From Piromyces finnis finn (taxonomy: Eukaryota; Fungi; Neocallimastigomycota): 64,000 nucleotides of DNA. A program made the translations under genes and the position numbers. Below the pieces are notes generated by a model. It worked only from the letters and a program-made list of their open reading frames with translations. It was not told the DNA's origin and did no database searches. The number at the start of each line of letters is the position of its first letter. The stretch's first letter is position 1. The stretch is from the NCBI GenBank assembly GCA_002104945.1, contig MCFH01000087.1, forward strand, positions 65,308-129,307, read 5' to 3'. Below are positions 1,697 through 62,400 of the stretch, piece after piece.

Positions 1697-1699
1697 AAT

Positions 1700-2440: not shown

Positions 2441-2535
2441 TTATAATTAAGAATTACATTTATTTTTATTTTATTTTTTTTTTTTATTTCATATAATATT
2501 ACCAATTAATTATTTATTCTATTTTCAATTCAATA

Positions 2536-3465
2536 ATGGGTGAATTTAAAATTCCACTTCCAACAATTGGAGGAACTAACCAAGATGTAGATACCTGGGT
2601 GGATCTTTTAGAAAATTGGTTAGCTATAGAAAAGGTAGCTAATGAAGATATCTACCGTTATATTTTGGCTAGTACGCGTGAAGAAGCTACCAAAGCGATT
2701 CTGGAACATAGGAGAAAAGTAAATAGAGACTTATCTCTTAATGAATGTAAAGTAATACTTATGAAGAAATATCATTCAAACAATGATAAAGCTGCCAAAT
2801 TTAGGAAATTAAAAATGTTAAAAATTGAAGTTAATGAAAATGTATTAGAATTTGATAAAAAGTTTATGAAGCTTTATGATGATCTGCCAGATGAATTCAA
2901 AGACAAGATTTCTGTGTATGACTATGAATTCGCTCTAGTTGCACAAGATGATGTTTATGAAAAGGTTGCATTCGCAGATCCAAAATCAATTGAAGATGCT
3001 ATGGGGATTGCTGAAAGATATTATGAAATTCATAATGGTCCAAATCTTAGAGCTAGTACTTCGTCTATGAACTACCGTCGTACTAATAATAACAATTATA
3101 ATAATTCGAATTATACTTATAGTAGGCCTAGATATTCGAATAATTACAATAATTACAATCCTCCACATAATATTAAAGTAAATAATAATGTTAATAATAA
3201 TAGTAATAATAATGGTAATAATGTTAATTATAGTAAAAGCTATAATAGTATGAATAATGGTGCTAGTACACAATATTCTAATATATCAAATTCTAATAAT
3301 AATACAAGATTAACTACTAGCATTAATAATCAAAATGATGAAATGAATGATTTGATTAACGGAATGCAGAACTTACACATAAAGACCTGTTATTTCTGCC
3401 ATGAACCAGGTCATATTGCCAGATTTTGCCCACACATGAACTCTACATATTATACAAAAAACTAG
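2536..3465 (+). CDS. gag: Gag of element A (309 aa)
   Basis: C-terminal CYFCHEPGHIARFC zinc knuckle, Asn-rich linker, position between PBS and pol. Confidence 0.92.
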   Translation: MGEFKIPLPTIGGTNQDVDTWVDLLENWLAIEKVANEDIYRYILASTREEATKAILEHRRKVNRDLSLNECKVILMKKYHSNNDKAAKFRKLKMLKIEVNENVLEFDKKFMKLYDDLPDEFKDKISVYDYEFALVAQDDVYEKVAFADPKSIEDAMGIAERYYEIHNGPNLRASTSSMNYRRTNNNNYNNSNYTYSRPRYSNNYNNYNPPHNIKVNNNVNNNSNNNGNNVNYSKSYNSMNNGASTQYSNISNSNNNTRLTTSINNQNDEMNDLINGMQNLHIKTCYFCHEPGHIARFCPHMNSTYYTKN

Positions 3466-40490: not shown

Positions 40491-40656
40491 AAGCATTAAT
40501 TCCATCAAGTAATAATTCTAATAATGCTACAGATAATAATTCTTCTGGTAATACCACTTCAGATAATGATGCTCATGGTTTAAATTTTATTCTTAAATTA
40601 TTCAACCGTATTTGGGATGGTGACTTCCCCAGCTCATGGAATGAATCCAGTATTGT
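40491..40656 (+). pseudogene. Fragment of LINE family 1 RT region, in opposite orientation to the full copies
   Basis: ALIPSSNNSNNATDNNSSGNTTSDNDAHGLNFILKLFNRIWDGDFPSSWNESSIV matches ORF 43099-45561. Confidence 0.92.

Positions 40657-42824: not shown

Positions 42825-42828
<4 letters not shown>
40651..42828 (-). mobile_element. 5' portion of LINE family 2 with upstream region and repeat X (inverted counterpart of ~59449-61640)
   Basis: Minus-strand ORF pieces 40985-41245 and 40573-41142 match 60921-61937 (WNINGWNPEKKDG APE start, one frameshift). The non-coding upstream DNA also aligns. Confidence 0.9.
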
Positions 42829-42862
<34 letters not shown>

Positions 42863-43098
42863 GGCATCAAATATTTTAAACTTTATTATTAATTTAATTA
42901 AAATTATAATACATGTAATAAAAAATTAAAAATAAAAATAAAAATAAAAAGAATATGTTTAAATAAACACAAATGAATAAAAATTGGGTATAATGTATTC
43001 TAGTAATTTTAATTAAAGTAAAAAAGCCACTATCATACTAAAGTATAATAATTGTATTTGACCTCCAATGGGACACCGAGCCAAAGATCAAAATTTTG

Positions 43099-45561
43099 TC
43101 ATGGAACAAAATTATGATCACCATTGGTTGCGCTGGCCCTCCTGGCCTGTCTTACTGTTTCTTCAGCATTGACGCTCTTGGATGTTGCTTCAAACCTTTT
43201 GAACATTGACCATTGCTGGCCAATAGCAAAAGGCATGATTTTGGTTAGAAGTTCCGCGGTTACCGTCAAGAATGGTGTTCCTTCGTTAGTACCAGATTGA
43301 ATCTGACGCTTACAAAGTTCTTTCCATTCCCTTGAATTGTAATTGATATTGTTAAAACTTCTTCCCCCAAGAAGGAATTTAAATATTTTACTGCACACAC
43401 TAGAATAATCATACACATTAATATTCACCGGATTATTAGAACTATTACTATCATTAACTAAATTACTATCTAAATTAGAATTATTATCTTCACTATTGCT
43501 ATCATTACTAATATTATTATTTCTATTACTACTATTGTTATTATTACTATTGTTATTACTACTATTATTACTATTACTATTAATGTTATTGCTGTCTCTA
43601 CTGATATTAACGTTTTCATTATTATTGATAGGACTATTGGAATTACGTTGACTGAAAAAATTTAGTAGCTGGACTATGGAATCATAATGTTTAATACGGA
43701 TATCTCTAAATGTTGGACAATCTAATAACCAATGTTTAATACTTTGAACACCACACTTGCAACATGGACAGTAGTTAGGACAAACTGGATCAACAAATTT
43801 AGCAGCTTTGGCAACTCTAGCATCCAACTTGTATCCGCTTCTTGCTTTCAATAGCCAGTAGAAGCCATAGGCAAACTCTGGGTATTCATAACATAATTTG
43901 ATAAAATCTTTAGTTTCAATAAATTTATTATCATCATAATATTGCGCTTTGATTGAATTCCCTTTGAGATCTTTCCAATAAAAGTTTTTAACTGCTTTAA
44001 CATCTCCATGTTTCTTTAGTTTTTTATCAAGTGTCCTACTTGATTTGCACCACGTGTATTTTCTAAATTTAGGAATGTAATTGACAAGGTGTGAGATAAT
44101 ACAATTTGAGTTTTTCCATTTGTTAAAACATCTAACCTGAGCTAACGCACATTTGGCTGACAATGGAGGAATATTCAAATCTTTTGAGATAGAGTATAAA
44201 GATATAAACGATACAGCTTTATGAACTCCGGCAACCCATCGTATTCCTTTGTTAACATGCTTCTGAGCAATCCTAGACCTAGCTTTGTTGGATCCAAGTA
44301 ATGGTGCAAAGTATGAAACTCTGCTAATCACTTGAGAGTTAAGTACTAGTTTTTTGAAAGGAATAGGAATATTAGGATTTCTTAAGAATTTACTGACTGA
44401 GAAAAGTCCTTTCAAAACCTTGTTATTAAGAGTTTTAATAACTGGTTTAAGGGATAAATTCTTATCAAATGGAACACCAAGATAAGTATAACAATCAGTA
44501 GTTGGAATGGGTTGTCCTGCTAAGTAAAATGTTGGATCTCTCTTGTTCTGATTTTCTATTGATTCAGGACGAATCACCATCGTTGAACATTTCTGGATAC
44601 CAAATTCCATTTCATTATACAAGGCCCATTCATTAACTCTTCTAAGCATCTTTTTTAAGCATCCTCTTGTTGGAGCACAAATAACTATATCATCTGCAAA
44701 AAGTCCACCACAGCATCGAGTGTCACCTAAACTGACTCCTAGATCTTCGCACTCTCTAAATATATCATTAATAAAGAGATTAAAGAGAATAGGAGAAAGA
44801 GGGCAACCTTGACGGACTCCTTTCTTCACATCAAAAGATTTCGAGAATTGTCCATCTAATTTGACATTAGCCTTAGATGTTAAATATAAATTTTTGATAA
44901 ATTGTAAACTCTTACCTCGGATTCCTAAACAATCTAATTTATGGAGAATATTACCGATTGGGACTGAATCGTATGCTTTCCTGAGATCTAAAAAGGCCAA
45001 ATATGTCTCTTTATTATCTAATTGACGTCTACGGCATATTTCTTGGATTGAAATGAAAAGACTGATACTTTCTTCCTTTTTTCGAAAACTAAATTGTTCA
45101 GGTCTAATGAAATTATTCTTTAAACCATATTCTGAGATTCTAGTGGTGACAATTTTGGAAATCAACTTAATACCATTATTGATAAGTGATATACCTCGAT
45201 AGTTATCACAATCTGTCAAATCTCCCTTCTTAGGAATAGAAACAATACTGGATTCATTCCATGAGTTGGGGAAGTCTCCATCCCAAATACGGTTAAATAA
45301 TTTAAGAATAAAATTTAAACCATGAGCATCATTATCTGAAGTGATATTACCAGAAGAATTATTATCTGTAGCATTATTAGAATCATTACTTGATGGAATT
45401 AATGCTTTGTAAAATTCAATTGGAATACCATCCGGACCCTGATGCTTTATAATTTGGAGTAGAGAGGATAGCTGACTTGACCTCATCAATACTAATATCT
45501 TGGTTGATATCCCACTCATCAAGCATAGGAAGTGAAAAACGTTTATTCGTTGGTTCTTCAT
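43099..45561 (-). CDS. RT and zinc-knuckle part of the LINE1a polyprotein
   Basis: GPDGIP, NYRGISL, FLDLRKAYDSV, GVRQGCPLSPILFN, FADD, CPCC…HWLLDCP. Confidence 0.93.
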   Translation of the reverse strand: MKNQRINVFHFLCLMSGISTKILVLMRSSQLSSLLQIIKHQGPDGIPIEFYKALIPSSNDSNNATDNNSSGNITSDNDAHGLNFILKLFNRIWDGDFPNSWNESSIVSIPKKGDLTDCDNYRGISLINNGIKLISKIVTTRISEYGLKNNFIRPEQFSFRKKEESISLFISIQEICRRRQLDNKETYLAFLDLRKAYDSVPIGNILHKLDCLGIRGKSLQFIKNLYLTSKANVKLDGQFSKSFDVKKGVRQGCPLSPILFNLFINDIFRECEDLGVSLGDTRCCGGLFADDIVICAPTRGCLKKMLRRVNEWALYNEMEFGIQKCSTMVIRPESIENQNKRDPTFYLAGQPIPTTDCYTYLGVPFDKNLSLKPVIKTLNNKVLKGLFSVSKFLRNPNIPIPFKKLVLNSQVISRVSYFAPLLGSNKARSRIAQKHVNKGIRWVAGVHKAVSFISLYSISKDLNIPPLSAKCALAQVRCFNKWKNSNCIISHLVNYIPKFRKYTWCKSSRTLDKKLKKHGDVKAVKNFYWKDLKGNSIKAQYYDDNKFIETKDFIKLCYEYPEFAYGFYWLLKARSGYKLDARVAKAAKFVDPVCPNYCPCCKCGVQSIKHWLLDCPTFRDIRIKHYDSIVQLLNFFSQRNSNSPINNNENVNISRDSNNINSNSNNSSNNNSNNNNSSNRNNNISNDSNSEDNNSNLDSNLVNDSNSSNNPVNINVYDYSSVCSKIFKFLLGGRSFNNINYNSREWKELCKRQIQSGTNEGTPFLTVTAELLTKIMPFAIGQQWSMFKRFEATSKSVNAEETVRQARRASATNGDHNFVP

Positions 45562-47599
45562 ACCAATGCTCTAAATCAAGACTTACACCACTTGGATCTG
45601 ATGCAAGATTTTCGAAATGATCATGCCACACATCTAGTTGTTCTTCCGTAGCAACAACTAATTCTCCGTTTTTGTTTTTAATTGGTTGAGCAATAAAGAA
45701 AGAATCTTTTCCAATTTTTGCAGTTTTCTTGATCCATTTCCAGGCCTTCTTAGGATTATGACTCTTCATATACTCACATCCTGTTTTAATCCAATGAAGA
45801 TATTCTTGCTTCCTAAATTCATTACATCTTTTGTGGATGTAATCAATGAGCTTACGGTAGATTTTAATTCTTTTAATAAATTCATCTATATCATAAATTC
45901 TTTCTTTTTTAAATCTCTTATACAACTTCATTTTGATTTTTTGGAGATTAAAAATTTGTTGTGAAATATGAAATGAAGACTTTATAACATTATTTGCTGA
46001 GGTAATACTGAGCTCGTCTGCAATTGAAAAAGCAGTTGAAGTAAACTCTTTGGAAAGTTCATCTGTAGAAACATTAAGATCGTTGAATTTTGCTGAAAGA
46101 ATTTGGAATTTATTATGACTGAGAATAGATTCCTTTTCCTCAATACATTTTAATCTATTCCATTTCAGAATTTTCTTAGGAACATTAAAGTCATTAGAAA
46201 AATCTTCCATAGGAATAACTTTACCATTAATAAGAAGTGGCTTATGGTCTGATACAGGATAAAAATTATTTATAAATGATCCTGAGTGAATAAGATCTTT
46301 CATCTTCGAATTGATAAGAGCATGGTCAATGTCGGAAGATTGATCACCTCGAGTCCAAGAGATAGTCGACCCTCTAAGCAGAAGAATTTCCCAATCTCCT
46401 AATCCATTAGTTGATAACCAGTTGGATAATTTTACTTTAGACATATTAAAATCACCAACAAGAATCGATGGATGGGATGAATGAGTTTGTAACCACAAGC
46501 GAACTTCTAACTTTGCATGATCAACATAGATGTTGTGATGACTATGAGGCATATAAACATTTCCAATCGAGCATTTGAATCTATTCCAGAGACTAAAAGT
46601 ATAAATAGAAATAATATACTTTCCAGAGAAGTTTTCAAGTGAGGCTTGACACGAATTGTGAAAACCTAAATATAAACCTCTCATTCCCGGAACTGATTCG
46701 TCAGCTTTCTTGAAAAAGTGTCTATAGTTTCGCAAAGTAACACGACAAGGATAATCTGTATTCGAACCAGAACCATTACCAGTTTCTTGGAAACATAAAA
46801 ATAATGGTTTGAAAATAGCTGTGAAATAGCTAATACTATCTCTCTTTTCGTGATTCCACCCATTGGTGTTCCAACTAAGACAAAAAGAAAAGTTATCAGG
46901 CTTGTTGGATGAGGAAGAATCGTTGCTATTATTATTATTATTAAAGTCATCATTATTAATGGATGATGCATCAGAGGAATAAGTAGAACTATTACTAGAT
47001 GGCTGTGAAACTGAAGAACTATCAACTATTGAACTGTTATCAGAGTTGATAGAACTATTAGAATTAATTGTTGAATGTTGAGATTGAAATTGTGTTTGCT
47101 GTAGATCTGGAATATTTTCATGATGGAAAACTTGTTGAAGATCCTGTTGAAGATCTTGTTGAAGATCGGATTGTTGATGAGATTGTTGAACTGATTGTTG
47201 AAATGATTGTTGAATAGAATGTTGATGTTTATTAGAAACTAAAATTTTACGTTTGAGAGTGGAAAAAGTATATTTGTGATTCCTTCTACTACGAGCTGAA
47301 AAGGAAATTGAGGTAACTGAAAGTTTCTTCTTTAATATGTGTAAGATTTTAATACAATCTTTCGATGAACCATGAACCTTGACTAAGAAAAAGTGATCAT
47401 TGAAAGTTTGAAAATATTTAACACTAATAACTGAATTAAATTTATCTTCTAGAATAACCTCGAGTTTTTCCCATAGCATATTTACTGACCATGATCGAAT
47501 ACCACGGATAAAGAAGGAGCGAATATCATCTAAGGGGATACCATAAGACCGGGTACCACGTCTGATATAATTCTTATCTTTAATATAAAGGACTGACAT
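45416..47599 (-). CDS. N-terminal and APE endonuclease part of the LINE1a polyprotein
   Basis: SWNTNG, FQET, VGDFN, IDHAL, SDHKP APE motifs. The frame breaks by 1 nt at KASG|PDG. Confidence 0.92.
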   Translation of the reverse strand: MSVLYIKDKNYIRRGTRSYGIPLDDIRSFFIRGIRSWSVNMLWEKLEVILEDKFNSVISVKYFQTFNDHFFLVKVHGSSKDCIKILHILKKKLSVTSISFSARSRRNHKYTFSTLKRKILVSNKHQHSIQQSFQQSVQQSHQQSDLQQDLQQDLQQVFHHENIPDLQQTQFQSQHSTINSNSSINSDNSSIVDSSSVSQPSSNSSTYSSDASSINNDDFNNNNNSNDSSSSNKPDNFSFCLSWNTNGWNHEKRDSISYFTAIFKPLFLCFQETGNGSGSNTDYPCRVTLRNYRHFFKKADESVPGMRGLYLGFHNSCQASLENFSGKYIISIYTFSLWNRFKCSIGNVYMPHSHHNIYVDHAKLEVRLWLQTHSSHPSILVGDFNMSKVKLSNWLSTNGLGDWEILLLRGSTISWTRGDQSSDIDHALINSKMKDLIHSGSFINNFYPVSDHKPLLINGKVIPMEDFSNDFNVPKKILKWNRLKCIEEKESILSHNKFQILSAKFNDLNVSTDELSKEFTSTAFSIADELSITSANNVIKSSFHISQQIFNLQKIKMKLYKRFKKERIYDIDEFIKRIKIYRKLIDYIHKRCNEFRKQEYLHWIKTGCEYMKSHNPKKAWKWIKKTAKIGKDSFFIAQPIKNKNGELVVATEEQLDVWHDHFENLASDPSGVSLDLEHWYEEPTNKRFSLPMLDEWDINQDISIDEVKSAILSTPNYKASGSGWYSN

Positions 47600-48041
47600 G
47601 ATAATAAATTCTAATTAAAAAATATTGAATATAAAAGAAATACTAATAGAAATTACAAATATAACGTATATGGAAAAAAATCTGTCTCTCTCTCTCTTCT
47701 TAAGTACTGGATAGTACAAAAATTGTTACGATGCTTTGTTTAAAGTTTCTTTTTTTTGAATTCTAGTTGTAAATTTTCTTTAAAAATTCTAATTTTGGTT
47801 TGTTGTTAGTAAATTCGATTCGCTTTTTGACACTAAAATTGTTTGACTTTACTTTTCATTAAATATTTAAATTGGTAAAAAATTTGAATCAAGAATGTCG
47901 ACACCAGAAAGCTTGTGAATAGTATTTTTACATGATGTAGAGTGAATCAGTCTCTTACAAGAAACAATACAACAATAGCTACATGAATATAAAAATACAA
48001 TGCAAATGCTAAAGTTGACTACATTGGATTCTTACAAGAGA

Positions 48042-48099
<58 letters not shown>

Positions 48100-48333
48100 G
48101 GCATCAAATATTTTAAACTTTATTATTAATTTAATTAAAATTATAATACATGAAATATAAAAATTAAAATAAAATAAAAATAAAAAAATATGTTTAAATA
48201 AACACAAATGAATAAAAATTGGGTATAATGTATTCTAGTAATTTTAATTAAAGTAAGAAAGCCACTATCATACTAAAGTATAATAATTGTATTTGACTTC
48301 CAATGGGACACCGAGCCAAAGATCAAAATTTTA

Positions 48334-50823
48334 TCATGGGACAAAATTATGATCTCCATTGGTTGCGCTGGCCCTCCTGGCCTGTCTTACTGTTTCTTCA
48401 GCATTGACGCTCTTGGATGTTGCTTCAAACCTTTTGAACATTGACCATTGCTGGCCAATAGCAAAAGGCATGATTTTGGTTAGAAGTTCCGCGGTTACCG
48501 TCAAGAATGGTGTTCCTTCATTAGTACCAGATTGAATCTGACGCTTACAAAGTTCTTTCCATTCCCTTGAATTGTAATTGATATTGTTAAAACTTCTTCC
48601 CCCAAGAAGGAATTTAAATATTTTACTGCACACACTAGAATAATCATACACATTAATATTCACCGGATTATTAGAACTATTACTATCATTAACTAAATTA
48701 CTATCTAAATTAGAATTATTATCTTCACTATTGCTATCATTACTAATATTATTATTTCTATTATTGTTATTATTACTATTGTTACTATTACTATTGTTAT
48801 TATTACTATTGTTACTATTACTATTAATATTATTACTATCTCTACTGATATTATCAATTTCATTATTATTGATAGGACTATTGGAATTACGTTGACTGAA
48901 AAAATTTAATAGCTGGACTATGGAATCATAATGTTTAATACGGATATCTCTAAATGTTGGACAATCTAATAACCAATGTTTAATACTTTGATCTCCACAC
49001 TTGCAACATGGACAGTAGTTAGGACAAACTGGATCAACAAATTTGGCAGCTTTGGCAACTCTAGCATCCAACTTGTATCCGCTTCTTGCTTTCAATAGCC
49101 AGTAGAAGCCATAGGCAAACTCTGGGTACTCATAACATAATTTAATAAAATCTTTAGTTTCAATAAACTTATTATCATCATAATATTGCGCTTTGATTGA
49201 ATTCCCTTTGAGATCTTTCCAATAAAAGTTTTTAACTGCTTTAACATCTCCATGTTTCTTTAGTTTTTTATCAAGTGTCCTACTTGATTTGCACCACGTG
49301 TATTTTCTAAATTTAGGAATGTAATTGACAAGGTATGAGATAATACAATTTGAGTTTTTCCATTTGTTAAAACATCTAACCTGAGCTAACGCACATTTGG
49401 CTGACAATGGAGGAATATTCAAATCTTTTGAAATAGAGTATAAAGATATAAACGATACAGCTTTATGAACTCCGGCAACCCATCGTATTCCTTTGTTAAC
49501 ATGCTTCTGTGCAATTCTAGACCTGGCTTTGTTGGATCCAAGTAATGGTGCAAAGTATGAAACTCTGCTAATCACTTGTGAGTTAAGTACTAGCTTTTTG
49601 AAGGGAATAGGAATATTAGGATTTCTTAAGAATTTACTGACTGAAAAAAGCCCTTTCAAAACCTTGTTATTAAGAGCTTTAATAACTGGTTTAAGGGACA
49701 GATTCTTATCAAATGGAACACCAAGATAAGTATAACAATCAGTAGTTGGAATGGGTTGTCCTGCTAAGTAAAATGTTGGATCTCTCTTGTTCTGATTTTC
49801 TATTGATTCAGGACGAATCACCATCGTTGAACACTTCTGGATACCAAATTCCATTTCATTATACAAGGCCCATTCATTAACTCTTCTAAGCATCTTTTTT
49901 AAGCATCCTCTTGTTGGAGCACAAATAACTATATCATCTGCAAAAAGTCCACCACAGCATCGAGTGTCACCTAAACTGACTCCGAGATCTTCACACTCTT
50001 TAAATATATCATTAATAAAGAGATTAAAGAGAATAGGAGAAAGAGGGCATCCTTGACGGACTCCTTTCTTCACATCAAAAGATTTCGAGAATTGTCCATC
50101 TAATTTGACATTAGCCTTAGATGTTAAATATAAATTTTTGATGAATTGTAAACTCTTACCTCGGATTCCTAAACAATCTAATTTATGGAGAATATTACCG
50201 ATTGGGACTGAATCGTATGCTTTCCTGAGATCTAAAAAGGCCAAATATGTCTCTTTATTATCTAATTGACGTCTACGGCATATTTCTTGGATTGAAATGA
50301 AAAGACTGATACTTTCTTCCTTTTTTCGAAAACCAAATTGTTCAGGTCTAATGAAATTATTCTTTAGACCATATTCTGAGATTCTAGTGGTGACAATTTT
50401 GGAAATCAACTTAATACCATTATTGATAAGTGATATACCTCGATAGTTATCACAATCTGTCAAATCTCCCTTCTTAGGAATAGAAACAATACTGGATTCA
50501 TTCCATGAGTTGGGGAAGTCTCCATCCCAAATACGGTTGAATAATTTAAGAATAAAATTTAAACCATAAGCATCATTATCTGAAGTGGTATTACCGGAAG
50601 AATTATTATCTGTAGCATTATTAGAATCATTACTTGATGGAATTAATGCTTTGTAAAATTCAATTGGAATACCATCCGGACCCTGATGCTTTATAATTCG
50701 GAGTAGTGAGGATAGCTGACTTGACTTCATCAATACTAATATCTTGGTTGATATCCCATTCATCAAGCATAGGGAGTGAAAAACGTTTATTCGTTGGTTC
50801 TTCATACCAATGCTCCAAATCAA
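48334..50823 (-). CDS. RT and zinc-knuckle part of the LINE1b polyprotein
   Basis: Same RT motifs as copy a, with EQFGFR intact. Confidence 0.93.
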   Translation of the reverse strand: MIWSIGMKNQRINVFHSLCLMNGISTKILVLMKSSQLSSLLRIIKHQGPDGIPIEFYKALIPSSNDSNNATDNNSSGNTTSDNDAYGLNFILKLFNRIWDGDFPNSWNESSIVSIPKKGDLTDCDNYRGISLINNGIKLISKIVTTRISEYGLKNNFIRPEQFGFRKKEESISLFISIQEICRRRQLDNKETYLAFLDLRKAYDSVPIGNILHKLDCLGIRGKSLQFIKNLYLTSKANVKLDGQFSKSFDVKKGVRQGCPLSPILFNLFINDIFKECEDLGVSLGDTRCCGGLFADDIVICAPTRGCLKKMLRRVNEWALYNEMEFGIQKCSTMVIRPESIENQNKRDPTFYLAGQPIPTTDCYTYLGVPFDKNLSLKPVIKALNNKVLKGLFSVSKFLRNPNIPIPFKKLVLNSQVISRVSYFAPLLGSNKARSRIAQKHVNKGIRWVAGVHKAVSFISLYSISKDLNIPPLSAKCALAQVRCFNKWKNSNCIISYLVNYIPKFRKYTWCKSSRTLDKKLKKHGDVKAVKNFYWKDLKGNSIKAQYYDDNKFIETKDFIKLCYEYPEFAYGFYWLLKARSGYKLDARVAKAAKFVDPVCPNYCPCCKCGDQSIKHWLLDCPTFRDIRIKHYDSIVQLLNFFSQRNSNSPINNNEIDNISRDSNNINSNSNNSNNNNSNSNNSNNNNNRNNNISNDSNSEDNNSNLDSNLVNDSNSSNNPVNINVYDYSSVCSKIFKFLLGGRSFNNINYNSREWKELCKRQIQSGTNEGTPFLTVTAELLTKIMPFAIGQQWSMFKRFEATSKSVNAEETVRQARRASATNGDHNFVP

Positions 50824-52855
50824 GACTTACACCACTTGGATCTGATGCAAGCTTTTCGAAATGATCATGCCACACATCTAGTTGTTCTTCCGTAGCAACA
50901 ACTAATTCTCCATTTTTGTTTTTAATTGGTTGAGCAATAAAGAAAGAATCTTTTCCAATTTTTGCAGTTTTCTTGATCCATTTCCAGGCCTTCTTAGGAT
51001 TATGACTCTTCATATACTCACATCCTGTTTTAATCCAATGAAGATATTCTTGCTTCCTAAATTCATTACATCTTTTGTGGATGTAATCAATGAGCTTACG
51101 GTAGATTTTAATTCTTTTAATAAATTCATCTATATCATAAATTCTTTCTTTTTTAAATCTCTTATACAACTTCATTTTGATTTTTTGGAGATTAAAAATT
51201 TGTTGTGAAATATGAAATGAAGACTTTATAACATTATTTGCTGAGGTAATACTGAGCTCGTCTGCAATTGAAAAAGCAGTTGAAGTAAACTCTTTGGAAA
51301 GTTCATCTGTAGAAACATTAGGATCGTTGAATTTTGCTGAAAGTATTTGGAATTTATTATGACTGAGAATAGATTCCTTTTCCTCAATACATTTTAATCT
51401 ATTCCATTTCAGAATTTTCTTAGGAACATTAAAGTCATTAGAAAAATCTTCCATAGGAATAATTTTACCATTAATAAGAAGTGGCTTATGGTCTGATACA
51501 GGATAAAAATTATTTATAAATGATCCTGAGTGAATAAGATCTTTCATCTTCGAATTGATAAGAGCATGGTCAATGTCGGAAGATTGATCACCTCGAGTCC
51601 AAGAGATAGTAGACCCTCTAAGCGGAAGAATTTCCCAATCTCCTAATCCATTAGTTGATAACCAGTTGGATAATTTTACTTTAGACATATTAAAATCACC
51701 AACAAGAATCGATGGATGGGATGAATGAGTTTGTAACCACAAGCGAACTTCTAACTTTGCATGATCAACATAGATGTTGTGATGACTATGAGGCATATAA
51801 ACATTTCCAATCGAGCATTTGAATCTATTCCAGAGACTAAAAGTATAAATAGAAATAATATACTTTCCAGAGAAGTTTTCAAGTGAGGCTTGACACGAAT
51901 TGTGAAAACCTAAATATAAACCTCTCATTCCCGGAACTGATTCGTCAGCTTTCTTGAAAAAGTGTCTATAGTTTCGCAAAGTAACACGACAAGGATAATC
52001 TGTATTCGATCCAGAACCATTACCAGTTTCTTGGAAACATAAGAATAATGGTTTGAAAATAGCTGTGAAATAGCTAATACTATCTCTCTTTTCGTGATTC
52101 CACCCATTGGTGTTCCAACTAAGACAAAAAGAAAAGTTATCAGGCTTGTTGGATGAGGAAGAATCGTTGCTATTATTATTATTATTAAAGTCATCGTTAT
52201 TAATGGATGATGCATCAGAGGAATAAGTAGAACTATTACTAGATGGCTGTGAAACTGAAGAACTATCAACTATTGAACTGTTATCAGAGTTGATAGAACT
52301 ATTAGAATTAATTGTTGAATGTTGAGATTGAAATTGTGTTTGCTGTAGATCTGGAATATTTTCATGATGGGAAACTTGTTGAAGATCCTGTTGAAGATCT
52401 TGTTGAAGATCGGATTGTTGATGAGATTGTTGAACTGATTGTTGAACTGATTGTTGAAATGATTGTTGAATAGAATGTTGATGTTTATTAGAAACTAAAA
52501 TTTTACGTTTGAGAGTGGAAAAAGTGTATTTGTGATTCCTTCTACTACGAGCTGAAAAGGAAATTGAGGTAACTGAAAGTTTCTTCTTTAACATGTGTAA
52601 GATTTTAATACAATCTTTTGATGAACCATGAACCTTGACTAAGAAAAAGTGATCATTGAAAGTTTGAAAATATTTAACACTAATAACTGAATTAAATTTA
52701 TCTTCTAGAATAACCTCGAGTTTTTCCCATAGCATATTTACTGACCATGATCGAATACCACGGATAAAGAAGGAGCGAATATCATCTAAGGGGATACCAT
52801 AAGACCGGGTACCACGTCTGATATAATTCTTATCTTTAATATAAAGGACTGACAT
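50660..52855 (-). CDS. N-terminal and APE endonuclease part of the LINE1b polyprotein
   Basis: Same APE motifs, one extra QQSV repeat, same frame break as copy a. Confidence 0.92.
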   Translation of the reverse strand: MSVLYIKDKNYIRRGTRSYGIPLDDIRSFFIRGIRSWSVNMLWEKLEVILEDKFNSVISVKYFQTFNDHFFLVKVHGSSKDCIKILHMLKKKLSVTSISFSARSRRNHKYTFSTLKRKILVSNKHQHSIQQSFQQSVQQSVQQSHQQSDLQQDLQQDLQQVSHHENIPDLQQTQFQSQHSTINSNSSINSDNSSIVDSSSVSQPSSNSSTYSSDASSINNDDFNNNNNSNDSSSSNKPDNFSFCLSWNTNGWNHEKRDSISYFTAIFKPLFLCFQETGNGSGSNTDYPCRVTLRNYRHFFKKADESVPGMRGLYLGFHNSCQASLENFSGKYIISIYTFSLWNRFKCSIGNVYMPHSHHNIYVDHAKLEVRLWLQTHSSHPSILVGDFNMSKVKLSNWLSTNGLGDWEILPLRGSTISWTRGDQSSDIDHALINSKMKDLIHSGSFINNFYPVSDHKPLLINGKIIPMEDFSNDFNVPKKILKWNRLKCIEEKESILSHNKFQILSAKFNDPNVSTDELSKEFTSTAFSIADELSITSANNVIKSSFHISQQIFNLQKIKMKLYKRFKKERIYDIDEFIKRIKIYRKLIDYIHKRCNEFRKQEYLHWIKTGCEYMKSHNPKKAWKWIKKTAKIGKDSFFIAQPIKNKNGELVVATEEQLDVWHDHFEKLASDPSGVSLDLEHWYEEPTNKRFSLPMLDEWDINQDISIDEVKSAILTTPNYKASGSGWYSN

Positions 52856-53500
52856 GATAATAAATTCTAATTAAAAAATATTGAATATAAAATAAATACT
52901 AATAAAAATTACAAATATAACGTATATGGAAAAAAATCTGTCTCTCTCTCTCTTCTTAAAAGTACTGGATAGTACAAAAATTGTTACGATGCTTTGTTTA
53001 AAGTTTCTTATTTTTTGAATTCTAGTTGTAAATTTTCTTTAAAAATTCTAGTTTTGGTTTGTTGTTAGTAAATTCGATTCGCTTTTTGACACTAAACTTG
53101 TTTGACTTTACTTTTCATTAAATATTTAAATTGGTAAAAAATTTGAATCAAGAATGTCGACACCAGAAAGCTTGTGAATAGTATTTTTACATGATGTAGA
53201 GTGAATCAGTCTCTTACAAGAAACAATACAACAATAGCTACATGAATATAAAAGTACAATGCAAATGCTAAAGTTGACTACATTGGATTCTTACAAGAGA
53301 AGAGTAGTACTACATGAATACATGAATAAAAGAAAAAATACAGCAACAAAATGTATTACTCTTCTAATTAAATACTATACAAACTTACCTGAAAAATCAA
53401 ACATTCACTTATTCATCAAATACTTAAATTTGATGAATAAAATGTTTTTTAATCGCTCAGTACCATGAGCTTAGTCCTAATAATTTTCCCTTGAAGACTA

Positions 53501-53857
53501 ACCAAGCATCCATTGCGCAATGCTTGGATTTAATTCTTTCTACTCTCTCAGTACCATGAGCATGAGTAGACCCCCTTGAGAAATTACATTTATTAAATAA
53601 ATGAAGGCACATTCCTAAGAGGGCACCAAGCATCCATTGCGCAATACTTGGATTTAATTCTTTCTACTCTCTCAGTACCATGAGCATGAGTAGACCCCCT
53701 TGATAAACTCCATTATTGAATAAATGAAGGCACATTCCTAAGAGGGCACCAAGCATCCATTGCGCAATACTTGGATTTAATTCTTTCTACTCTCTCAGTA
53801 CCATGAGCATGAGTAGACCCCCTTGAGAAACTACATTTATTAAATAAATGAAGGCAC
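53501..53857. repeat. Tandem array of a ~123-bp hairpin-rich unit of repeat X (~2.9 copies)
   Basis: Units start with accaagcatccattgcgcaat at 53501, 53625 and 53748. Confidence 0.93.
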
Positions 53858-54439
53858 GAATACCACGGATAAAGAACTATAATTTTCATATTACCAAATC
53901 AAATCAAAGCTTTATGCCTTTTTCATACCATACACCTAAAAAACGTTCAACCTTCAATCAAATACATAACATTTTAAAAGGAAATTATCATCTTTTTAAC
54001 AACAATACAATTTAAATGAAAAAGGAGTGAAAAAAAAAGAATAACAACCATTTTCTTTAACAACCACAAATCTTTCAATAATAAATAACCTTTTATAAAT
54101 CCCTTAATAATAAGAGGATATTTATTTTTATTTTACAAATTTATTATAATTTTTATTAAACCAATTAAAATTAAGATTTACATTAATTTATATTTAGGTT
54201 TTTTCTTTTTAATTTATGTAGAAATTATTTTATTATTTTCTATAATTTATTAAGTTCTATTTTCTTATCCTATTATTACTATTACATTTTTTTTATTTTA
54301 ATTTTCTTATTTATTATTATCCTCATACAATGAGGACTTTCAATTAAAAAAAAAAAACTTTCAATTAAGGATTGTCGCTTATTATTAGAATATTAACAAT
54401 AATAAACTTTTTCTTTTACTATTTCATTCAATAGTGCGT

Positions 54440-55993
54440 TTAAGCCTTACCAGCCATCTTGGCATCCATTTCTTCAAGAGTAAGACCCTTACATTCAATA
54501 ACGTAGAATTGAGAGTAAATCCAAGCGAGGAAACTGGCAGCAGCAAAAAGAATGAAAGTGTTAGTAGACCATTTCTTCATGAGGAATGGACCAACAAAAC
54601 CAATAATCCAATTGTTTAAGAAGTTAGAGACAGTACCAACAGCAGAACCCTTAACTCTGACACGAAGTGGGAAAACTTCAGCTTGGTAAACCCATGGAAC
54701 TGGACCCCAAGTCCAAGCGAATGAGAATACGAATAAGAAAACGGAAGCAACAGCAGCGTATTGCCATCCCTTGATTGGTTGTTCAATGAACTTACCATTA
54801 GCATCCTTCTTACCACCAGTTAACTTAGAGCAAGCCCAAGTAGAAAGATGGAAGACCATCATCATAAGAGAACCAATAACTAAAAGAGTCTTACGACCTA
54901 ATCTTTCAATACCCCACATACCTGGGAAGGTGGAAACAAAGTTAACGAGGTTGTTGACGTTTGGTAAAACAACAGTAGACATAACCTTGTTGAAACCCAT
55001 TTCAGAGTAAATTTGACTTTGGTAGTACATAATAACGTTAATACCAGTCCATTGTTGGAAAAGTTGCATTAAGAAAGTAATGAAAGTACGACGACGAATG
55101 ACGGAACTGAAAAGTTCACCGAATGAAGAGGAACCAGCAGCACGAGTAGCAGCAACATCTTCTTGAATAGCCTTAAGTTCTTCTTGAACAACAGCATCAG
55201 AAGTAGAGGCGGCATTAAGCTTAGCAAGAATTTCAACAGCTTCTTCATCACGATCCTTAGAACATAACCATCTTGGGGACTTTGGAACGAAGCACATAAG
55301 AGTAGCAAGACCAAGACCTGGAACAACTTGTAATAAAAGAGCTAATCTCCATTCAAGGTTAGAGATTTCTTCATCACCCTTTCTAGTGAAAGAAAGTAAA
55401 CCTTCTGGCTTACGGTTAGTCTTGTACCAGATAAGAGCATTGATAAGAGAAGCAACAATAATACCAAAAGTAGTCATAAGTTGATAACAAGAAGAAAGAG
55501 TACCTCTAAGGTTAGATGGAGCAACTTCTGAAATGTAGGTTGGGCAAAGTACACCATTACAACCAATAGAAAGACCAGTGATAAGACGACCAATGGCAAT
55601 CATAACAGAGGAACGGATAGAAGAACCTTGAATAATAGCACCACAGGTGAAGATACAAGCACCAACCATAATGGTTCTTTGACGACCAAACTTTTCACCA
55701 AGGTAAGTAGCCATAAGAGCACCACAAAGAGCACCAAGAACGAAACTAGAAGTAATAACACCTTCAAGGAAAGCCTTATTACCTTTTTCTTCTAAATCAC
55801 GGTACATAGCCTTTGAGGCATCATCAGTAGATTCACCAACTTCATCAATAGCTTTTCCCTTCCATTCGTGGAATCTGAAGAAAATACGGAATGAGTCCAT
55901 AACAAGAACAACATTCATAACACCAACTTCATAACCAAAAAGAAGACCACCAAGTGAGGCGGTAACAGCGACTAAAAATTGAAAGCTGTTCAT
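54440..55993 (-). CDS. MFS sugar porter (hexose/pentose transporter family), intronless, 517 aa
   Basis: GGLLFGYE, GEKFGRQ, YISEVAP…RG, PKSPRW, QLFQQWTGINVIMYY, ERLGRK, WGPVPWVYQAEVFPLRVR, ECKGLTLEEMD. Strong codon bias (GGT, GCT, AAG, TTC). Confidence 0.96.
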   Translation of the reverse strand: MNSFQFLVAVTASLGGLLFGYEVGVMNVVLVMDSFRIFFRFHEWKGKAIDEVGESTDDASKAMYRDLEEKGNKAFLEGVITSSFVLGALCGALMATYLGEKFGRQRTIMVGACIFTCGAIIQGSSIRSSVMIAIGRLITGLSIGCNGVLCPTYISEVAPSNLRGTLSSCYQLMTTFGIIVASLINALIWYKTNRKPEGLLSFTRKGDEEISNLEWRLALLLQVVPGLGLATLMCFVPKSPRWLCSKDRDEEAVEILAKLNAASTSDAVVQEELKAIQEDVAATRAAGSSSFGELFSSVIRRRTFITFLMQLFQQWTGINVIMYYQSQIYSEMGFNKVMSTVVLPNVNNLVNFVSTFPGMWGIERLGRKTLLVIGSLMMMVFHLSTWACSKLTGGKKDANGKFIEQPIKGWQYAAVASVFLFVFSFAWTWGPVPWVYQAEVFPLRVRVKGSAVGTVSNFLNNWIIGFVGPFLMKKWSTNTFILFAAASFLAWIYSQFYVIECKGLTLEEMDAKMAGKA

Positions 55994-56800
55994 TTTTTTT
56001 TAAAAAAAAAATTAAACTTAAATTAAACTTAAATTAATATTATTATTAAATAATAATGATTTTTTTTTAAAAGAAAATTTATTTCTTTTATACAAAATTT
56101 CAATATAAAGATAAAATCATAATATTTAATTATAATTATATATAATTAATTGTATTTGTATATAAATTATTTTTAAATTAATAATTATTTTCAATTTATT
56201 TTAATATGTTATGATTATTGCTTTATTATATTTATTATATTTATGAATATTAAAATTTAATTTTAATTCTTTCGAGAATTAAAATTAAATATTAAAATAA
56301 ATTATAATATAATATTTTATAAATAGAAATTTTTATAATTAATTAAAATAAATTATTTAAATTTATTATTAACCTTTTTTATTTAAACAATTGAGATGTA
56401 AATTTATTGGTTATTACAATATTAAATATATATTAAAATATTTTCTTTTAATATATATTTAATAATTTAGTGTTTCATTTTAAGAGGATATTTATTATTT
56501 AATAAAAAACTTTATTCAAATTTTAAATTTTGTAAAATATTATAATTTCTTTTATAATTTAAAAAATGTTAAATTATTATTAGTAAATAATAAAAATATA
56601 TTTAATCTTAAAAAAATTAAAAATTCATAAATTTTATGTGTTATTTAAAAAATATTATTTTTATCAATTTATTAAAAATATTTAAAATAAAAGTTAAATT
56701 TATATAATTCCTAATAATTACTAAACTTTAAATATTATAAATTAAAAAATTTTAATAAAAATATAAATTATTATTTTATTAAGTTTATCTTATGATTTTT

Positions 56801-57014
56801 ATAATATAATATAATATAATATAATATAATATAATATAATATAATATAATATAATATAATATAATATAATATAATATAATATAATATAATATAATATAAT
56901 ATAATATAATATAATATAATATAATATAATATAATATAATATAATATAATATAATATAATATAATATAATATAATATAATATAATATAATATAATATAAT
57001 ATAATATAATATAA
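56801..57014. repeat. (ATAAT)n microsatellite, ~42 perfect copies
   Basis: Pure 5-mer array inside the palindrome spacer. Confidence 0.98.
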
Positions 57015-57387
57015 ATTTTGTGTACATTTTTGAAACAAATGTAAAGTTTATTATATAAAAGTTAAATATTATATTATAATTTATTTTAATATTTAATTTT
57101 AATTCTCGAAAGAATTAAAATTAAATTTTAATATTCATAAATATAATAAATATAATAAAGCAATAATCATAACATATTAAAATAAATTGAAAATAATTAT
57201 TAATTTAAAAATAATTTATATACAAATACAATTAATTATATATAATTATAATTAAATATTATGATTTTATCTTTATATTGAAATTTTGTATAAAAGAAAT
57301 AAATTTTCTTTTAAAAAAAAATCATTATTATTTAATAATAATATTAATTTAAGTTTAATTTAAGTTTAATTTTTTTTTTAAAAAAAA

Positions 57388-58941
57388 ATGAACAGCTTTC
57401 AATTTTTAGTCGCTGTTACCGCCTCACTTGGTGGTCTTCTTTTTGGTTATGAAGTTGGTGTTATGAATGTTGTTCTTGTTATGGACTCATTCCGTATTTT
57501 CTTCAGATTCCACGAATGGAAGGGAAAAGCTATTGATGAAGTTGGTGAATCTACTGATGATGCCTCAAAGGCTATGTACCGTGATTTAGAAGAAAAAGGT
57601 AATAAGGCTTTCCTTGAAGGTGTTATTACTTCTAGTTTCGTTCTTGGTGCTCTTTGTGGTGCTCTTATGGCTACTTACCTTGGTGAAAAGTTTGGTCGTC
57701 AAAGAACCATTATGGTTGGTGCTTGTATCTTCACCTGTGGTGCTATTATTCAAGGTTCTTCTATCCGTTCCTCTGTTATGATTGCCATTGGTCGTCTTAT
57801 CACTGGTCTTTCTATTGGTTGTAATGGTGTACTTTGCCCAACCTACATTTCAGAAGTTGCTCCATCTAACCTTAGAGGTACTCTTTCTTCTTGTTATCAA
57901 CTTATGACTACTTTTGGTATTATTGTTGCTTCTCTTATCAATGCTCTTATCTGGTACAAGACTAACCGTAAGCCAGAAGGTTTACTTTCTTTCACTAGAA
58001 AGGGTGATGAAGAAATCTCTAACCTTGAATGGAGATTAGCTCTTTTATTACAAGTTGTTCCAGGTCTTGGTCTTGCTACTCTTATGTGCTTCGTTCCAAA
58101 GTCCCCAAGATGGTTATGTTCTAAGGATCGTGATGAAGAAGCTGTTGAAATTCTTGCTAAGCTTAATGCCGCCTCTACTTCTGATGCTGTTGTTCAAGAA
58201 GAACTTAAGGCTATTCAAGAAGATGTTGCTGCTACTCGTGCTGCTGGTTCCTCTTCATTCGGTGAACTTTTCAGTTCCGTCATTCGTCGTCGTACTTTCA
58301 TTACTTTCTTAATGCAACTTTTCCAACAATGGACTGGTATTAACGTTATTATGTACTACCAAAGTCAAATTTACTCTGAAATGGGTTTCAACAAGGTTAT
58401 GTCTACTGTTGTTTTACCAAACGTCAACAACCTCGTTAACTTTGTTTCCACCTTCCCAGGTATGTGGGGTATTGAAAGATTAGGTCGTAAGACTCTTTTA
58501 GTTATTGGTTCTCTTATGATGATGGTCTTCCATCTTTCTACTTGGGCTTGCTCTAAGTTAACTGGTGGTAAGAAGGATGCTAATGGTAAGTTCATTGAAC
58601 AACCAATCAAGGGATGGCAATACGCTGCTGTTGCTTCCGTTTTCTTATTCGTATTCTCATTCGCTTGGACTTGGGGTCCAGTTCCATGGGTTTACCAAGC
58701 TGAAGTTTTCCCACTTCGTGTCAGAGTTAAGGGTTCTGCTGTTGGTACTGTCTCTAACTTCTTAAACAATTGGATTATTGGTTTTGTTGGTCCATTCCTC
58801 ATGAAGAAATGGTCTACTAACACTTTCATTCTTTTTGCTGCTGCCAGTTTCCTCGCTTGGATTTACTCTCAATTCTACGTTATTGAATGTAAGGGTCTTA
58901 CTCTTGAAGAAATGGATGCCAAGATGGCTGGTAAGGCTTAA
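57388..58941 (+). CDS. MFS sugar porter, identical inverted copy
   Basis: Protein identical to 54440-55993. Confidence 0.96.
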   Translation: MNSFQFLVAVTASLGGLLFGYEVGVMNVVLVMDSFRIFFRFHEWKGKAIDEVGESTDDASKAMYRDLEEKGNKAFLEGVITSSFVLGALCGALMATYLGEKFGRQRTIMVGACIFTCGAIIQGSSIRSSVMIAIGRLITGLSIGCNGVLCPTYISEVAPSNLRGTLSSCYQLMTTFGIIVASLINALIWYKTNRKPEGLLSFTRKGDEEISNLEWRLALLLQVVPGLGLATLMCFVPKSPRWLCSKDRDEEAVEILAKLNAASTSDAVVQEELKAIQEDVAATRAAGSSSFGELFSSVIRRRTFITFLMQLFQQWTGINVIMYYQSQIYSEMGFNKVMSTVVLPNVNNLVNFVSTFPGMWGIERLGRKTLLVIGSLMMMVFHLSTWACSKLTGGKKDANGKFIEQPIKGWQYAAVASVFLFVFSFAWTWGPVPWVYQAEVFPLRVRVKGSAVGTVSNFLNNWIIGFVGPFLMKKWSTNTFILFAAASFLAWIYSQFYVIECKGLTLEEMDAKMAGKA

Positions 58942-59448
58942 ACGCACTATTGAATGAAATAGTAAAAGAAAAAGTTTATTATTGTTAATATTCTAATAAT
59001 AAGCGACAATCCTTAATTGAAAGTTTTTTTTTTTAATTGAAAGTCCTCATTGTATGAGGATAATAATAAATAAGAAAATTAAAATAAAAAAAATGTAATA
59101 GTAATAATAGGATAAGAAAATAGAACTTAATAAATTATAGAAAATAATAAAATAATTTCTACATAAATTAAAAAGAAAAAACCTAAATATAAATTAATGT
59201 AAATCTTAATTTTAATTGGTTTAATAAAAATTATAATAAATTTGTAAAATAAAAATAAATATCCTCTTATTATTAAGGGATTTATAAAAGGTTATTTATT
59301 ATTGAAAGATTTGTGGTTGTTAAAGAAAATGGTTGTTATTCTTTTTTTTTCACTCCTTTTTCATTTAAATTGTATTGTTGTTAAAAAGATGATAATTTCC
59401 TTTTAAAATGTTATGTATTTGATTGAAGGTTGAACGTTTTTTAGGTGT

Positions 59449-62400
59449 ATGGTATGAAAAAGGCATAAAGCTTTGATTTGATTTGGTAATATGAAAATTA
59501 TAGTTCTTTATCCGTGGTATTCGTGCCTTCATTTATTTAATAAATGTAGTTTCTCAAGGGGGTCTACTCATGCTCATGGTACTGAGAGAGTAGAAAGAAT
59601 TAAATCCAAGTATTGCGCAATGGATACTTGGTTAGTCTTTATTTGGAAATATTATTAGGACTAAGCTCATGGTACTGAGCGAACAGAGTTGATAATTTGA
59701 GTGTTAGTTGTTATATCATATATCCCTTACACCTTCAACTTATTTTTTAGATAGTAGTTGCTTTAACAACTTTTATAACATATTATTTTAAACTTAAAAT
59801 TGTTTGATTCGGTAGTATTAAATACTGATTTTGAATATTTCTTGATTTCATTTTTATTTTAGCTTTCATCGATAATTTGTTATCCCAGTTTACTACTTAT
59901 TCTCTTTGTTCTTTTATTCCTTTTTTATTCTTTATATGTTGATTAGTCAGATAGTTTTGTTTTTTCAGTTAGTTGGTTATTCCTTTCATTTATTCTTGAG
60001 TTTCGTGTGGGGTGCAGCTTTCATTACTATAATCATATTTAATCTTTTATTTTTTCTATTTTTATTATTTACGAGGGGCGCGGCTTTTTTTTATTTTTCC
60101 TTTATGATTTTATATGATTCTAGTAATATCTTTTTTTATTTCTTATTTTTTTGTAACTCTAGATTTTCCAAGGAATCTCTTTTCTACTAACATTCTTTTG
60201 TATACTTTTTCTATCTCTTTTCTATATATATATATTTCTTATACTTTATATTATATGTATATTTATATATCTGTATAACTTAATTAGGTTTATTATGGAC
60301 TATTATGGTAAGTATTAACACCTTTTTTTCTTTAACATTTCTATTATCAAAGCTTCTATCCTGGAAAATCGAGTATTCTATTTTTATATTGTAAATACTA
60401 CTCTTGTTTCAATTTTATCTTTAAAAAAAAAAAAAAAAAAAAAATTTTATTATGTTTACCCAAAATTCTTCAACTTTTTTCCATTATTTTTGTTATAACA
60501 ACTTTTCACTCTTATTATCTCTCTACCTTACAACATAAACAACCTATATGAATGTTCAATTTCAACAATCAGAATCAACACAATACAATAATCATCCAAT
60601 AAATTATACAATTCTTATTAATATAAAGAGCTTTCAAAATACAGTTATAATACAGAAATCCAAAGTGATAGATATTCAAAATTTATCTTCCCGTTTAAAG
60701 TCTTCAGTAGAGTTAGAACTAAGTTTGTCAACAACTTAGCCACTTTTCCAGTTATAAATTTAAAATATTGTTTGACAAATAATCCACTTGCTATATAATA
60801 TATCCGTCTTTACTATTATTATTTTTATTTTACTATATATTTTATTTCATTATCTTATTTATATCATTATATCAATACTTCAAACTATTAATATCTATTG
60901 TCATAATAAGTTCTTTCAAAATGAACAATACCAATTGTACTGTACCTACCTTACGACGTGGTCTTCGTTTCTTCGGATCTAACTCCAATAAATCATATCT
61001 AATTTTTATCCATGATCTTAGTTCATGGTCAAAACAACGACTAATGGAATTTCTTTTAAAGGACATTCAACCTTTCAATGATATTCTTCAATCCCTCACC
61101 AAAAAATATTCACAATCACTCGGTATCTATTTCATTCTTAAAGTCAATGGAAAATGTCCGCTTAAAGCCATGTTACTTATACACTCACTTTCTGAAAAAC
61201 TCCCAATCTCTAGTAAAATATCTTGGAAATTCATTGATAAGCTCAAAAACAATAGATCATACAAAAACAAACGATCTATCAAATCTACTACTGGTCCACT
61301 CTCTGACGATTTCTATTTTAGTCATCTAAGCTCTAATGCTTCCTTTTTCAACTTATGTACTTGTTGGAACATCAATGGTTGGAACCCGGAGAAAAAGGAC
61401 GGTGTTTTATACTTCATCTCTGTTTTCAAACCTGTATGTGTCTGTCTTCAAGAAGTAGGTAACAGCCAATTCCTCTGTGGTAATGCAATTTCCTCCCCAT
61501 GCCTACTGAACTATAAACCAGTACACAGACGTGCTAATCCTAAAGTTCCAGGTATGAGAGGACTTTACATTGGTGTTCATAATTCTTGTTCCTTTACTCC
61601 TGAACCTCTTCTATATAAGTACATCATTTCAGTTACAATATTGTCATTTTGGAACCAGAGATGTACCATTGGTAATATTTACTTCCCGCAAACTAGATGG
61701 CCGGATGCTAGATTAATTGCCTTTGATGAACTTGATAAGTGGTTAACAACGCATAACAAATTCAACCACCCAGCTATCCTTGTAGGAGACTTTAATATGT
61801 CAGCTATTAAAATCAAATCTTATATATCACAACACTTCCCGGATTGGACTATGGCTGAGTTAACTGGTAATAATTTACCTGGGAAAAAGGATCTAAATCT
61901 TCATGCATTGATCATATTATATACAACAAAGCTATGACAGAACACATAAACAAATCTTCAGTTTGTGAAGTTTTCCACGATGTTTCTGATCACAAACCGA
62001 TCCTTGTGTCTTGTAAAAAAGACTCTTCGGATGATTTCAAAAAGCCTAAGAAGACCTTTAAGTGGTCAAGTCATATCTGTAACACAAAGTGTTCTGACAT
62101 TCTTACTAGTAATCGCTTTGCTGTTCTAGCTTCCGAGCTTGAAGCTAATTGCGATAGCCTTTCGGCTGACGATATGGTTTCAAGATTTTTAGATACTTCC
62201 AAAACTATAGGTAAAGAAATAAAAGCCATTGTGCCTGCAGATTTAAAAGGTCCAGCATTCCATTGCCCTCAATACATCAAAAACTTATCACATGAAAAAC
62301 ACCTGGCTTACAAAAATATTAAGCCCCTTTCAGATTGCGCTGACATGGAAAATTATCTTAACCAGTTCTCCATATACCAAAATCTATGTAATACCATCAA

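Follow-up and report, generated by a model that had tools for sequence, protein, structure and literature searches.

A sugar-porter palindrome found at two loci of Piromyces finnis and probably kept uniform by gene conversion

How does a fungal genome come to carry one transporter gene twice, head to head, in the two arms of an almost perfect inverted repeat, and is such a structure a fresh amplification or the well-kept product of an older event? This question is raised by a palindrome, here termed P1, in the terminal 64 kb of contig MCFH01000087.1 (C219) of Piromyces finnis, the whole stretch that was analysed and is referred to below as the window. We report that each arm of P1 contains a complete sugar-porter gene and that the centre of the palindrome recurs at a second locus, P2, which is spread over the end of contig C195 and the start of contig C163. 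The differences between the two loci point to an older duplication that has probably been homogenised by repeat-to-repeat correction, and not to a fresh one-off amplification.

In agreement with the first-pass annotation, which was made from the letters of the window alone and had described near-perfect inverted arms around a 746-bp spacer, direct comparison of the P1 arms (Table 1) yielded a single substitution, at arm position 7 (window 53754 C versus 59626 T; arm positions run from 1 at the outer end to 2570 at the inner end), and a 1-nt length difference within an A-run near 54347-54356. The AT-rich intergenic DNA within the arms matches as closely as the coding sequence (CDS), as had likewise been noticed, and chance cannot have produced a perfect inverted repeat of 2.57 kb. 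Each arm had been taken to be the gene with its own flanks; this holds for both genes, except that the outer ~120 nt are not unique flank but the 5' end of a long interspersed nuclear element (LINE). The arms enclose an asymmetric spacer whose unique part U, in a search of the whole genome assembly (56.46 Mb in 232 contigs), matched only copies of this palindrome. A perfect hairpin, contained in a segment (56222-56323) with a DNA fold of -17.7 kcal/mol (z = -3.9), sits within each arm and not at the centre of the palindrome. The right end of P1 lies 4.4 kb from the end of C219.

The two genes of P1 are oriented head to head, with 324 nt between each start codon and the inner end of its arm, and they encode proteins that are 100 % identical, which bears out the earlier claim of a complete and identical transporter of the major facilitator superfamily (MFS) in either arm: both open reading frames (ORFs) of 517 codons are intact, and the Pfam model PF00083 (Sugar_tr) is matched with an E-value of 3e-115 over profile positions 1-450 of 452. 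The profile TIGR00879 'sugar porter' is matched with 367.1 bits against a cutoff of 237.8. Furthermore, the translation contains the motifs GEKFGRQRT, ERLGRKT, VPKSPRW, QLFQQWTGINVIMYY and WGPVPW, to be read against the marks of the sugar porter (SP) family, namely GRR/K loops, a PESPR-like motif, QQxxGxN in the seventh transmembrane segment (TM7) and GPxxW in TM10; profile and motifs alike thus place the 517-aa protein in this family. A phmmer search against the PDB placed STP10 first (6.5e-52), followed by STP6, GlcP, PfHT1, GLUT1/3/5 and XylE, so that the closest solved relatives are the plant proteins STP10 and STP6. The gene is, by these marks, a predicted intronless sugar porter of the MFS.

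The best protein match was annotated as 'general substrate transporter' of Piromyces finnis. In a public gene model of 495 aa, two in-frame pieces of 11 residues each are spliced out as introns, and the conserved ERLGRK loop is in one of them. However, the 517-aa ORF aligns with solved sugar porters through both of these pieces, and the uninterrupted ORF is the better gene model. The next paralogue in the genome shares 51 % identity with the 517-aa protein, and a metagenome scan recovered 19 orthologue loci at 65-82 % identity, on contigs of 1.4-3.9 kb that are too short to reveal the gene arrangement.

The first-pass annotation had described one palindrome. According to the whole-genome search, however, the assembly contains its centre five times, and these copies represent at least two real loci. 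A query with one arm found copies on C20 (two pairs), C151, C195 and C163. Every arm copy lies at or near a contig end, and five contig ends in the reference stop within this repeat. The segment C20 9828-25683 corresponds to the window locus, as it has identical arms, shows no substitution in 4.4 kb of right flank and carries the same lone difference between left and right arm; C20, read from this alignment, is a repeated assembly of the P1 locus. C195 at its end and C163 at its start have 1.44 kb of a (TATTA)n spacer in common, and C195 very probably continues into C163. The resulting palindrome P2 has arms of ~2680 nt without any substitution between them and a spacer of ~1.6 kb, in which the microsatellite is longer than the 42 units of P1 and extends over ~1 kb. 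P2 is a separate locus, because neither the window nor C151 has flanks collinear with those of P2. We considered P1 and P2 as alleles or haplotigs and rejected this, since flank collinearity is absent over 40 kb on the left and 30 kb on the right. Thus, on the assembled sequence, there are at least two palindrome loci in the genome. Five intact copies of the ORF, all with the same protein, are present in the assembly (two in C219 and one in the redundant C20), hence four real genes are predicted, which encode one identical transporter and form two divergently transcribed pairs.

Two of the contig ends involved have peculiarities of their own. C20 1-9771 is a noisy reverse complement of the adjoining sequence, in that the first ~9.8 kb repeat what comes next, folding at the poly(A)/poly(T) of a LINE; indels are far more frequent in this part, its LINE is a mosaic of the two elements termed B1 and B2 in Table 1, and it is probably a poor or chimeric contig end. 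C151 has the right flank of the window with two adjacent differences in 4.4 kb, so that C219 very probably continues into C151; further out, C151 and C20 differ by indel noise. The start of C151 (1-6100) comprises P2-type arms and spacer with many frameshifts, joined to the outer arm and right flank of P1 at arm position ~251. We lean towards regarding this start as a chimeric contig end, the alternative being a third palindrome.

The inner arm boundaries of P1 and P2 are the same to the nucleotide, and the P2 spacer is homologous to that of P1 but inverted relative to the flanks; part U differs by a 10-nt indel only, and the unique 49-nt piece by one base. Between the loci, divergence is graded along the arm (Table 1): it is highest in the 3' flank, low in the 3' untranslated region (UTR) and almost nil in the CDS, the 5' flank and the spacer, and outside arm position ~250 P1 and P2 are unrelated. 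At each of the ~32-35 substitutions that separate P1 from P2, both arms of a palindrome agree with each other. Both loci show what is expected of palindromes maintained by conversion, that is, arms at least 99.9 % identical (1 substitution in 2570 nt for P1 and 0 in ~2680 for P2), an unduplicated spacer and intact genes. They also differ from each other where their own arms agree, as under concerted evolution, a pattern that two recent independent formations would produce as well.

Table 1. Features of P1 and its surroundings (window positions) and divergence between P1 and P2 (arm positions)
Feature	Position	Strand	Length	Remarks
Left arm of P1	53748-56317		2570 nt	repeat search, self-BLAST, direct comparison
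Right arm of P1	57064-59632		2569 nt	repeat search, self-BLAST, direct comparison
Asymmetric spacer of P1	56318-57063		746 nt	5.9 % G+C
Unique spacer part U	56318-56799		482 nt
(TAATA)42 microsatellite in P1 spacer	56802-57011
Unique spacer piece	57015-57063		49 nt
Perfect 16-bp hairpin, TTCG loop	56255-56290; mirror copy 57091-57126			~30 nt inside inner boundary of each arm
Left sugar-porter copy	54440-55993	-		uninterrupted 517-aa ORF; Pfam Sugar_tr 3e-115
Right sugar-porter copy	57388-58941	+		517-aa ORF; TIGR00879 sugar porter
LINE 5' end (last 123-nt monomer) in left arm	53748-53867	-	outer ~120 nt	continuous with LINE B2
LINE 5' end (last monomer) in right arm	59513-59632	+	outer ~120 nt	continuous with LINE A'
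LINE B2, left flank of P1	48065-53867	-		apurinic/apyrimidinic endonuclease (APE) and reverse transcriptase (RT) ORFs
Three tandem 5' monomers of B2	53466-53835		123 nt each
LINE B1, tandem partner of B2	42828-48046	-		5'-truncated; 98 % identical to B2
LINE A', right flank of P1	59513-64000	+		runs to contig end; young family member (other copies 97-100 % identical)
Older LINE copy A with 63-nt non-LINE flank (42766-42828)	40651-42828	-		92-93 % identical to A'
P1 versus P2, 3' flank	arm positions 251-430			24-27 substitutions (13-15 %)
P1 versus P2, 3' UTR zone	arm positions 431-692			6 substitutions (2.3 %)
P1 versus P2, CDS	arm positions 693-2246		1554 nt	1 substitution, synonymous, codon 342
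P1 versus P2, 5' flank	arm positions 2247-2570		324 nt	1 substitution

We favour, with somewhat more confidence than doubt, a history of one palindrome origin followed by gene conversion both between arms and between loci. A single origin of the palindrome centre would be the simplest explanation, because the inner boundaries are identical and the unique spacer is common to both loci. Subsequently, arm-to-arm conversion within each locus would have removed substitutions between the arms, and it is the agreement of the arms at sites where the loci differ that represents the signature of concerted evolution by this process. The near-identity of CDS, 5' flank and spacer, as against 13-15 % divergence in the 3' flank, in turn suggests a recent exchange of the centre between the loci, which would have kept these parts alike. 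The opposite orientation of the two spacers might be attributed to a crossover between the arms, or to the repair of a break in or near the spacer from the mirror-symmetric arms; owing to this symmetry, repair can insert the spacer either way round, in accord with the observed inversion. Both arm-to-arm conversion and rare spacer inversion have been documented in sex-chromosome palindromes (PMC3723533). The first-pass annotation had offered a choice between a very recent event and ongoing homogenisation. Of these, homogenisation is favoured by a P2 whose 3' flank is 13-15 % off while its own arms are identical.

As far as the alignments tell, the outer limits of arm identity are set by LINEs with tandem 5' monomers. 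Arm identity in P1 ends inside the last 5' monomer, where the B-type LINE on the left and the A-type LINE on the right lose homology, and the lone arm difference at position 7 is a base that distinguishes A-type from B-type monomers. The LINE 5' terminus was located by aligning further copies of the element. More than 100 monomers across the genome match arm positions 1-111, and positions 121-250 are flank found only at P1. The A' family comprises dozens of copies at 97-100 % identity. Each arm of P2, for its part, finishes with ~290 nt that belong to the ORF of an A-type LINE. Beyond this, the right arm runs up against a ~2-kb deletion internal to the LINE, and the left arm continues for another 30 nt until it reaches a B-like LINE at its canonical 5' terminus. 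We infer that the outer edge of P1 may have been shaped by gap repair anchored on one side in homology of the arms and on the other in homology of LINE monomers; such repair would copy the LINE junction into both arms.

Three other interpretations were tried and wholly or mostly given up. A coding-like piece in the right flank of P2 might have marked an ancestral host gene, and hence P2 as the parent locus, but it belongs to the A-type LINE ORF. Likewise, a 29-nt filler at the left end of P2, first taken for an end-joining junction, consists of normal LINE bases, with the neighbouring element ending at its canonical 5' terminus. An older outer palindrome formed by A (40651-42828) and A' (59449-61640) was mostly rejected, as A is an older copy (92-93 %) of a many-copy family.

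Several points weigh against the history of single origin and conversion. It rests on one assembly of one isolate, and all arm copies are at or near contig ends, so that the assembler was in trouble at exactly these places; two of these ends look wrong, namely that of C20 (1-9771) and the start of C151. Moreover, the low divergence at arm positions 431-692 could reflect constraint on the 3' UTR and not a conversion tract, and the relation of LINE A with its 63-nt flank (42766-42828) to the arms is unaccounted for. The same pattern of differences would also result from two recent, independent inverted duplications of old single-copy paralogues, generated by template switching or break-induced replication and followed by one repair event that transferred the centre, with genes, 5' flanks and spacer, from one locus to the other; the arms would then be alike owing to their youth. 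To this scenario we give a small but real chance. The P1 arms include the LINE 5' end of a family whose members are 97-100 % identical, hence the last event that equalised the outer arms was young, and the outer boundary of P1 lies in monomer homology of two inverted LINEs, as a homology-guided template switch would leave it. However, the same head-to-head duplication of the same gene has to be assumed twice, together with a transfer that in both arms ended within one stretch free of single-nucleotide polymorphisms (SNPs), from arm position 673 to 1221, and gene conversion between loci is still required. The ends of the P2 arms, hit by different secondary events 30 nt apart, also fit arms that were once longer.

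Another explanation would be an artefact of assembly, with fold-back or chimeric reads or mis-joins at LINEs hiding a real locus that has only one gene. The reference was assembled from PacBio reads only, with Falcon, FinisherSC and Quiver, into 232 contigs (PMC5622200, Table 2), the copies all sit at contig ends, C20 1-9771 has many indels and the look of a fold-back, and C151 seems to begin with a chimera. Nevertheless, a fold-back caused by a missed adapter leaves no spacer, whereas the spacer of P1 is asymmetric and its 746 nt are unique. Furthermore, P1 lies inside C219, which continues for 4.4 kb beyond it, and is bordered by different LINEs to the left and right, and the same architecture is found at P2 with substitutions of its own, a 10-nt spacer indel, a longer microsatellite and other flanks. 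Arms of 2.6 kb are also far shorter than the PacBio inserts, which were size-selected for more than 10 kb (PMC5622200). We thus regard an artefact as unlikely, and rather clearly so.

The first-pass annotation had proposed an adaptive increase in dosage comparable to that of SUL1 or HXT6/7 in budding yeast. [quoted passage not shown] Near-perfect arm identity that includes intergenic DNA would be expected from it, a strong hairpin is located ~30 nt from each inner boundary, and nutrient transporters are classic targets of such amplification (PMC4689423). P1 and P2 indeed resemble the ODIRA amplicons of SUL1 in sulfate-limited yeast in that inverted copies of a nutrient-transporter gene meet head to head (PMC4689423). 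However, products of ODIRA are interstitial inverted triplications of 3, 5 or 7 copies, in which the central copy is inverted relative to two direct ones; short interrupted inverted repeats form their boundaries, and a replication origin lies within them (PMC4689423). Each Piromyces locus, in contrast, has two copies around a long unique spacer, and there are two such loci, diverged from each other; an adjacent third copy in direct orientation, as an inverted triplication demands, was found neither by self-BLAST of the window nor by the whole-genome search. At the junctions, 746 nt (P1) to ~1.6 kb (P2) of unique spacer stand in place of a short loop, and the AT-rich sequence makes short inverted repeats uninformative. 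The same centre is, moreover, present at a second locus with a 3' flank that is 13-15 % different, and the structure thus predates this divergence.

The analogy with HXT6/7 fares no better. Amplification of these genes in glucose-limited yeast is reportedly a direct tandem event, caused by unequal crossover between paralogues under laboratory selection. The likeness consists in additional, near-identical copies of a sugar-porter family gene; P1, by contrast, is inverted with a spacer and is not a tandem array.

Finally, the palindrome might be a mobile element of the foldback type, equipped with terminal inverted repeats of 2.3 kb, that took the transporter to a second site. This reading, although suggested by arms and spacer that are common to two loci in different surroundings, was rejected as very improbable, as homology between the loci fades outward (0.1 %, 2.3 %, 13-15 %, then ~30 %) without sharp termini, the sequence just outside the shared part is mirrored at each locus and so renders a target-site duplication unreadable (none was found), the unit contains no transposase, and only two loci were found.

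A history of single origin and conversion has counterparts elsewhere. Long inverted repeats that mediate inversions and gene conversion are known from Candida albicans and other fungi. The Piromyces palindromes resemble those of C. albicans in being of kilobase scale, ORF-bearing and homogenised, with an intervening segment that inverts, but differ in the arrays of LINE 5' monomers at their outer boundaries, which are specific to the Piromyces locus. We know of no long inverted repeats of this type described in the Neocallimastigomycota. Palindromes of mammalian sex chromosomes (those named P1-P8 on the human Y, and those of the primate and mouse X) likewise combine arms that are more than 99.9 % identical with a unique spacer and intact arm genes (PMC3723533; PMC8327919). 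As in P. finnis, copies of such a palindrome differ from one another while their own arms agree, although the copies compared there are orthologues and here paralogous loci, and the spacer can invert. The differences are, first, one of size, with arms of 2.6 kb here as against 9 kb to 1.45 Mb. Second, the palindromes described here belong to a fungal genome without a known sex chromosome and hold a nutrient transporter instead of a testis gene. Third, exchange between two loci would be added to that between arms, and conversion is in this case deduced from one assembly.

As to the meaning of these loci for the fungus, seven MFS sugar transporters were counted in the P. finnis transcriptome (PMC5168858). 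With so few, four identical copies make up a sizeable share of the sugar-uptake repertoire, and an adaptive effect of the dosage provided by four copies is possible. The sugar porter also is a candidate for heterologous use. If conversion indeed maintains them, P1 and P2 offer a compact model, of a size suited to the polymerase chain reaction (PCR), for the way in which palindromes are maintained: the arms measure 2.6 kb, diagnostic SNPs tell the two loci apart, and the fungus is culturable and early-diverging. Conversion between arms, exchange between loci and the flipping of spacers could be measured in it directly. In addition, the reference assembly could be joined at two places, C219 to C151 (where it also overlaps C20) and C195 to C163. 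Although this currently seems more doubtful than not, we speculate that small palindromes kept identical by conversion between arms and between loci are a regular store of extra genes for nutrient uptake or fibre degradation in anaerobic gut fungi, seeded and bounded by LINE 5' monomers and flipping their spacers in vivo. If so, spacer flipping would also explain why long-read assemblies break at such loci, and the palindromes would be an autosomal fungal counterpart of those on sex chromosomes.

The LINEs around P1 exhibit several further peculiarities. The 63-nt non-LINE sequence at 42766-42828 recurs at 53869-53931 and 59449-59511 with 97-100 % identity and nowhere else in the genome. In the arms it adjoins the LINE 5' end, and at 42766-42828 it adjoins the 5' end of the old LINE A, so that the B1-B2 insertion stands between its copies as it would between those of a very long target-site duplication. 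LINE A itself is chimeric: at ~40651 its A-type sequence joins an inverted B-type segment (window 40491-40660), which is 97 % identical to 45242-45407 and 50486-50651, via the microhomology TATTGT, a junction that resembles the product of twin-priming or of a template switch.

Furthermore, the two LINE families, which are ~71 % identical in the RT region, share one 123-nt 5' monomer (53466-53835, 42599-42765 and 59513-59632). B-type LINEs have about three of these in tandem and A-type LINEs one, and the monomer has more than 100 genomic copies at 96-100 % identity. Such shared 5' monomers resemble the monomeric promoters of mouse L1. At several unrelated loci, B-type LINEs are arranged head to tail, so that the poly(A) of each borders on the 5' region of its neighbour (42828-48046 and 48065-53305 in the window, and the end of C195), which suggests that insertion of these LINEs prefers the 5' ends of existing copies.

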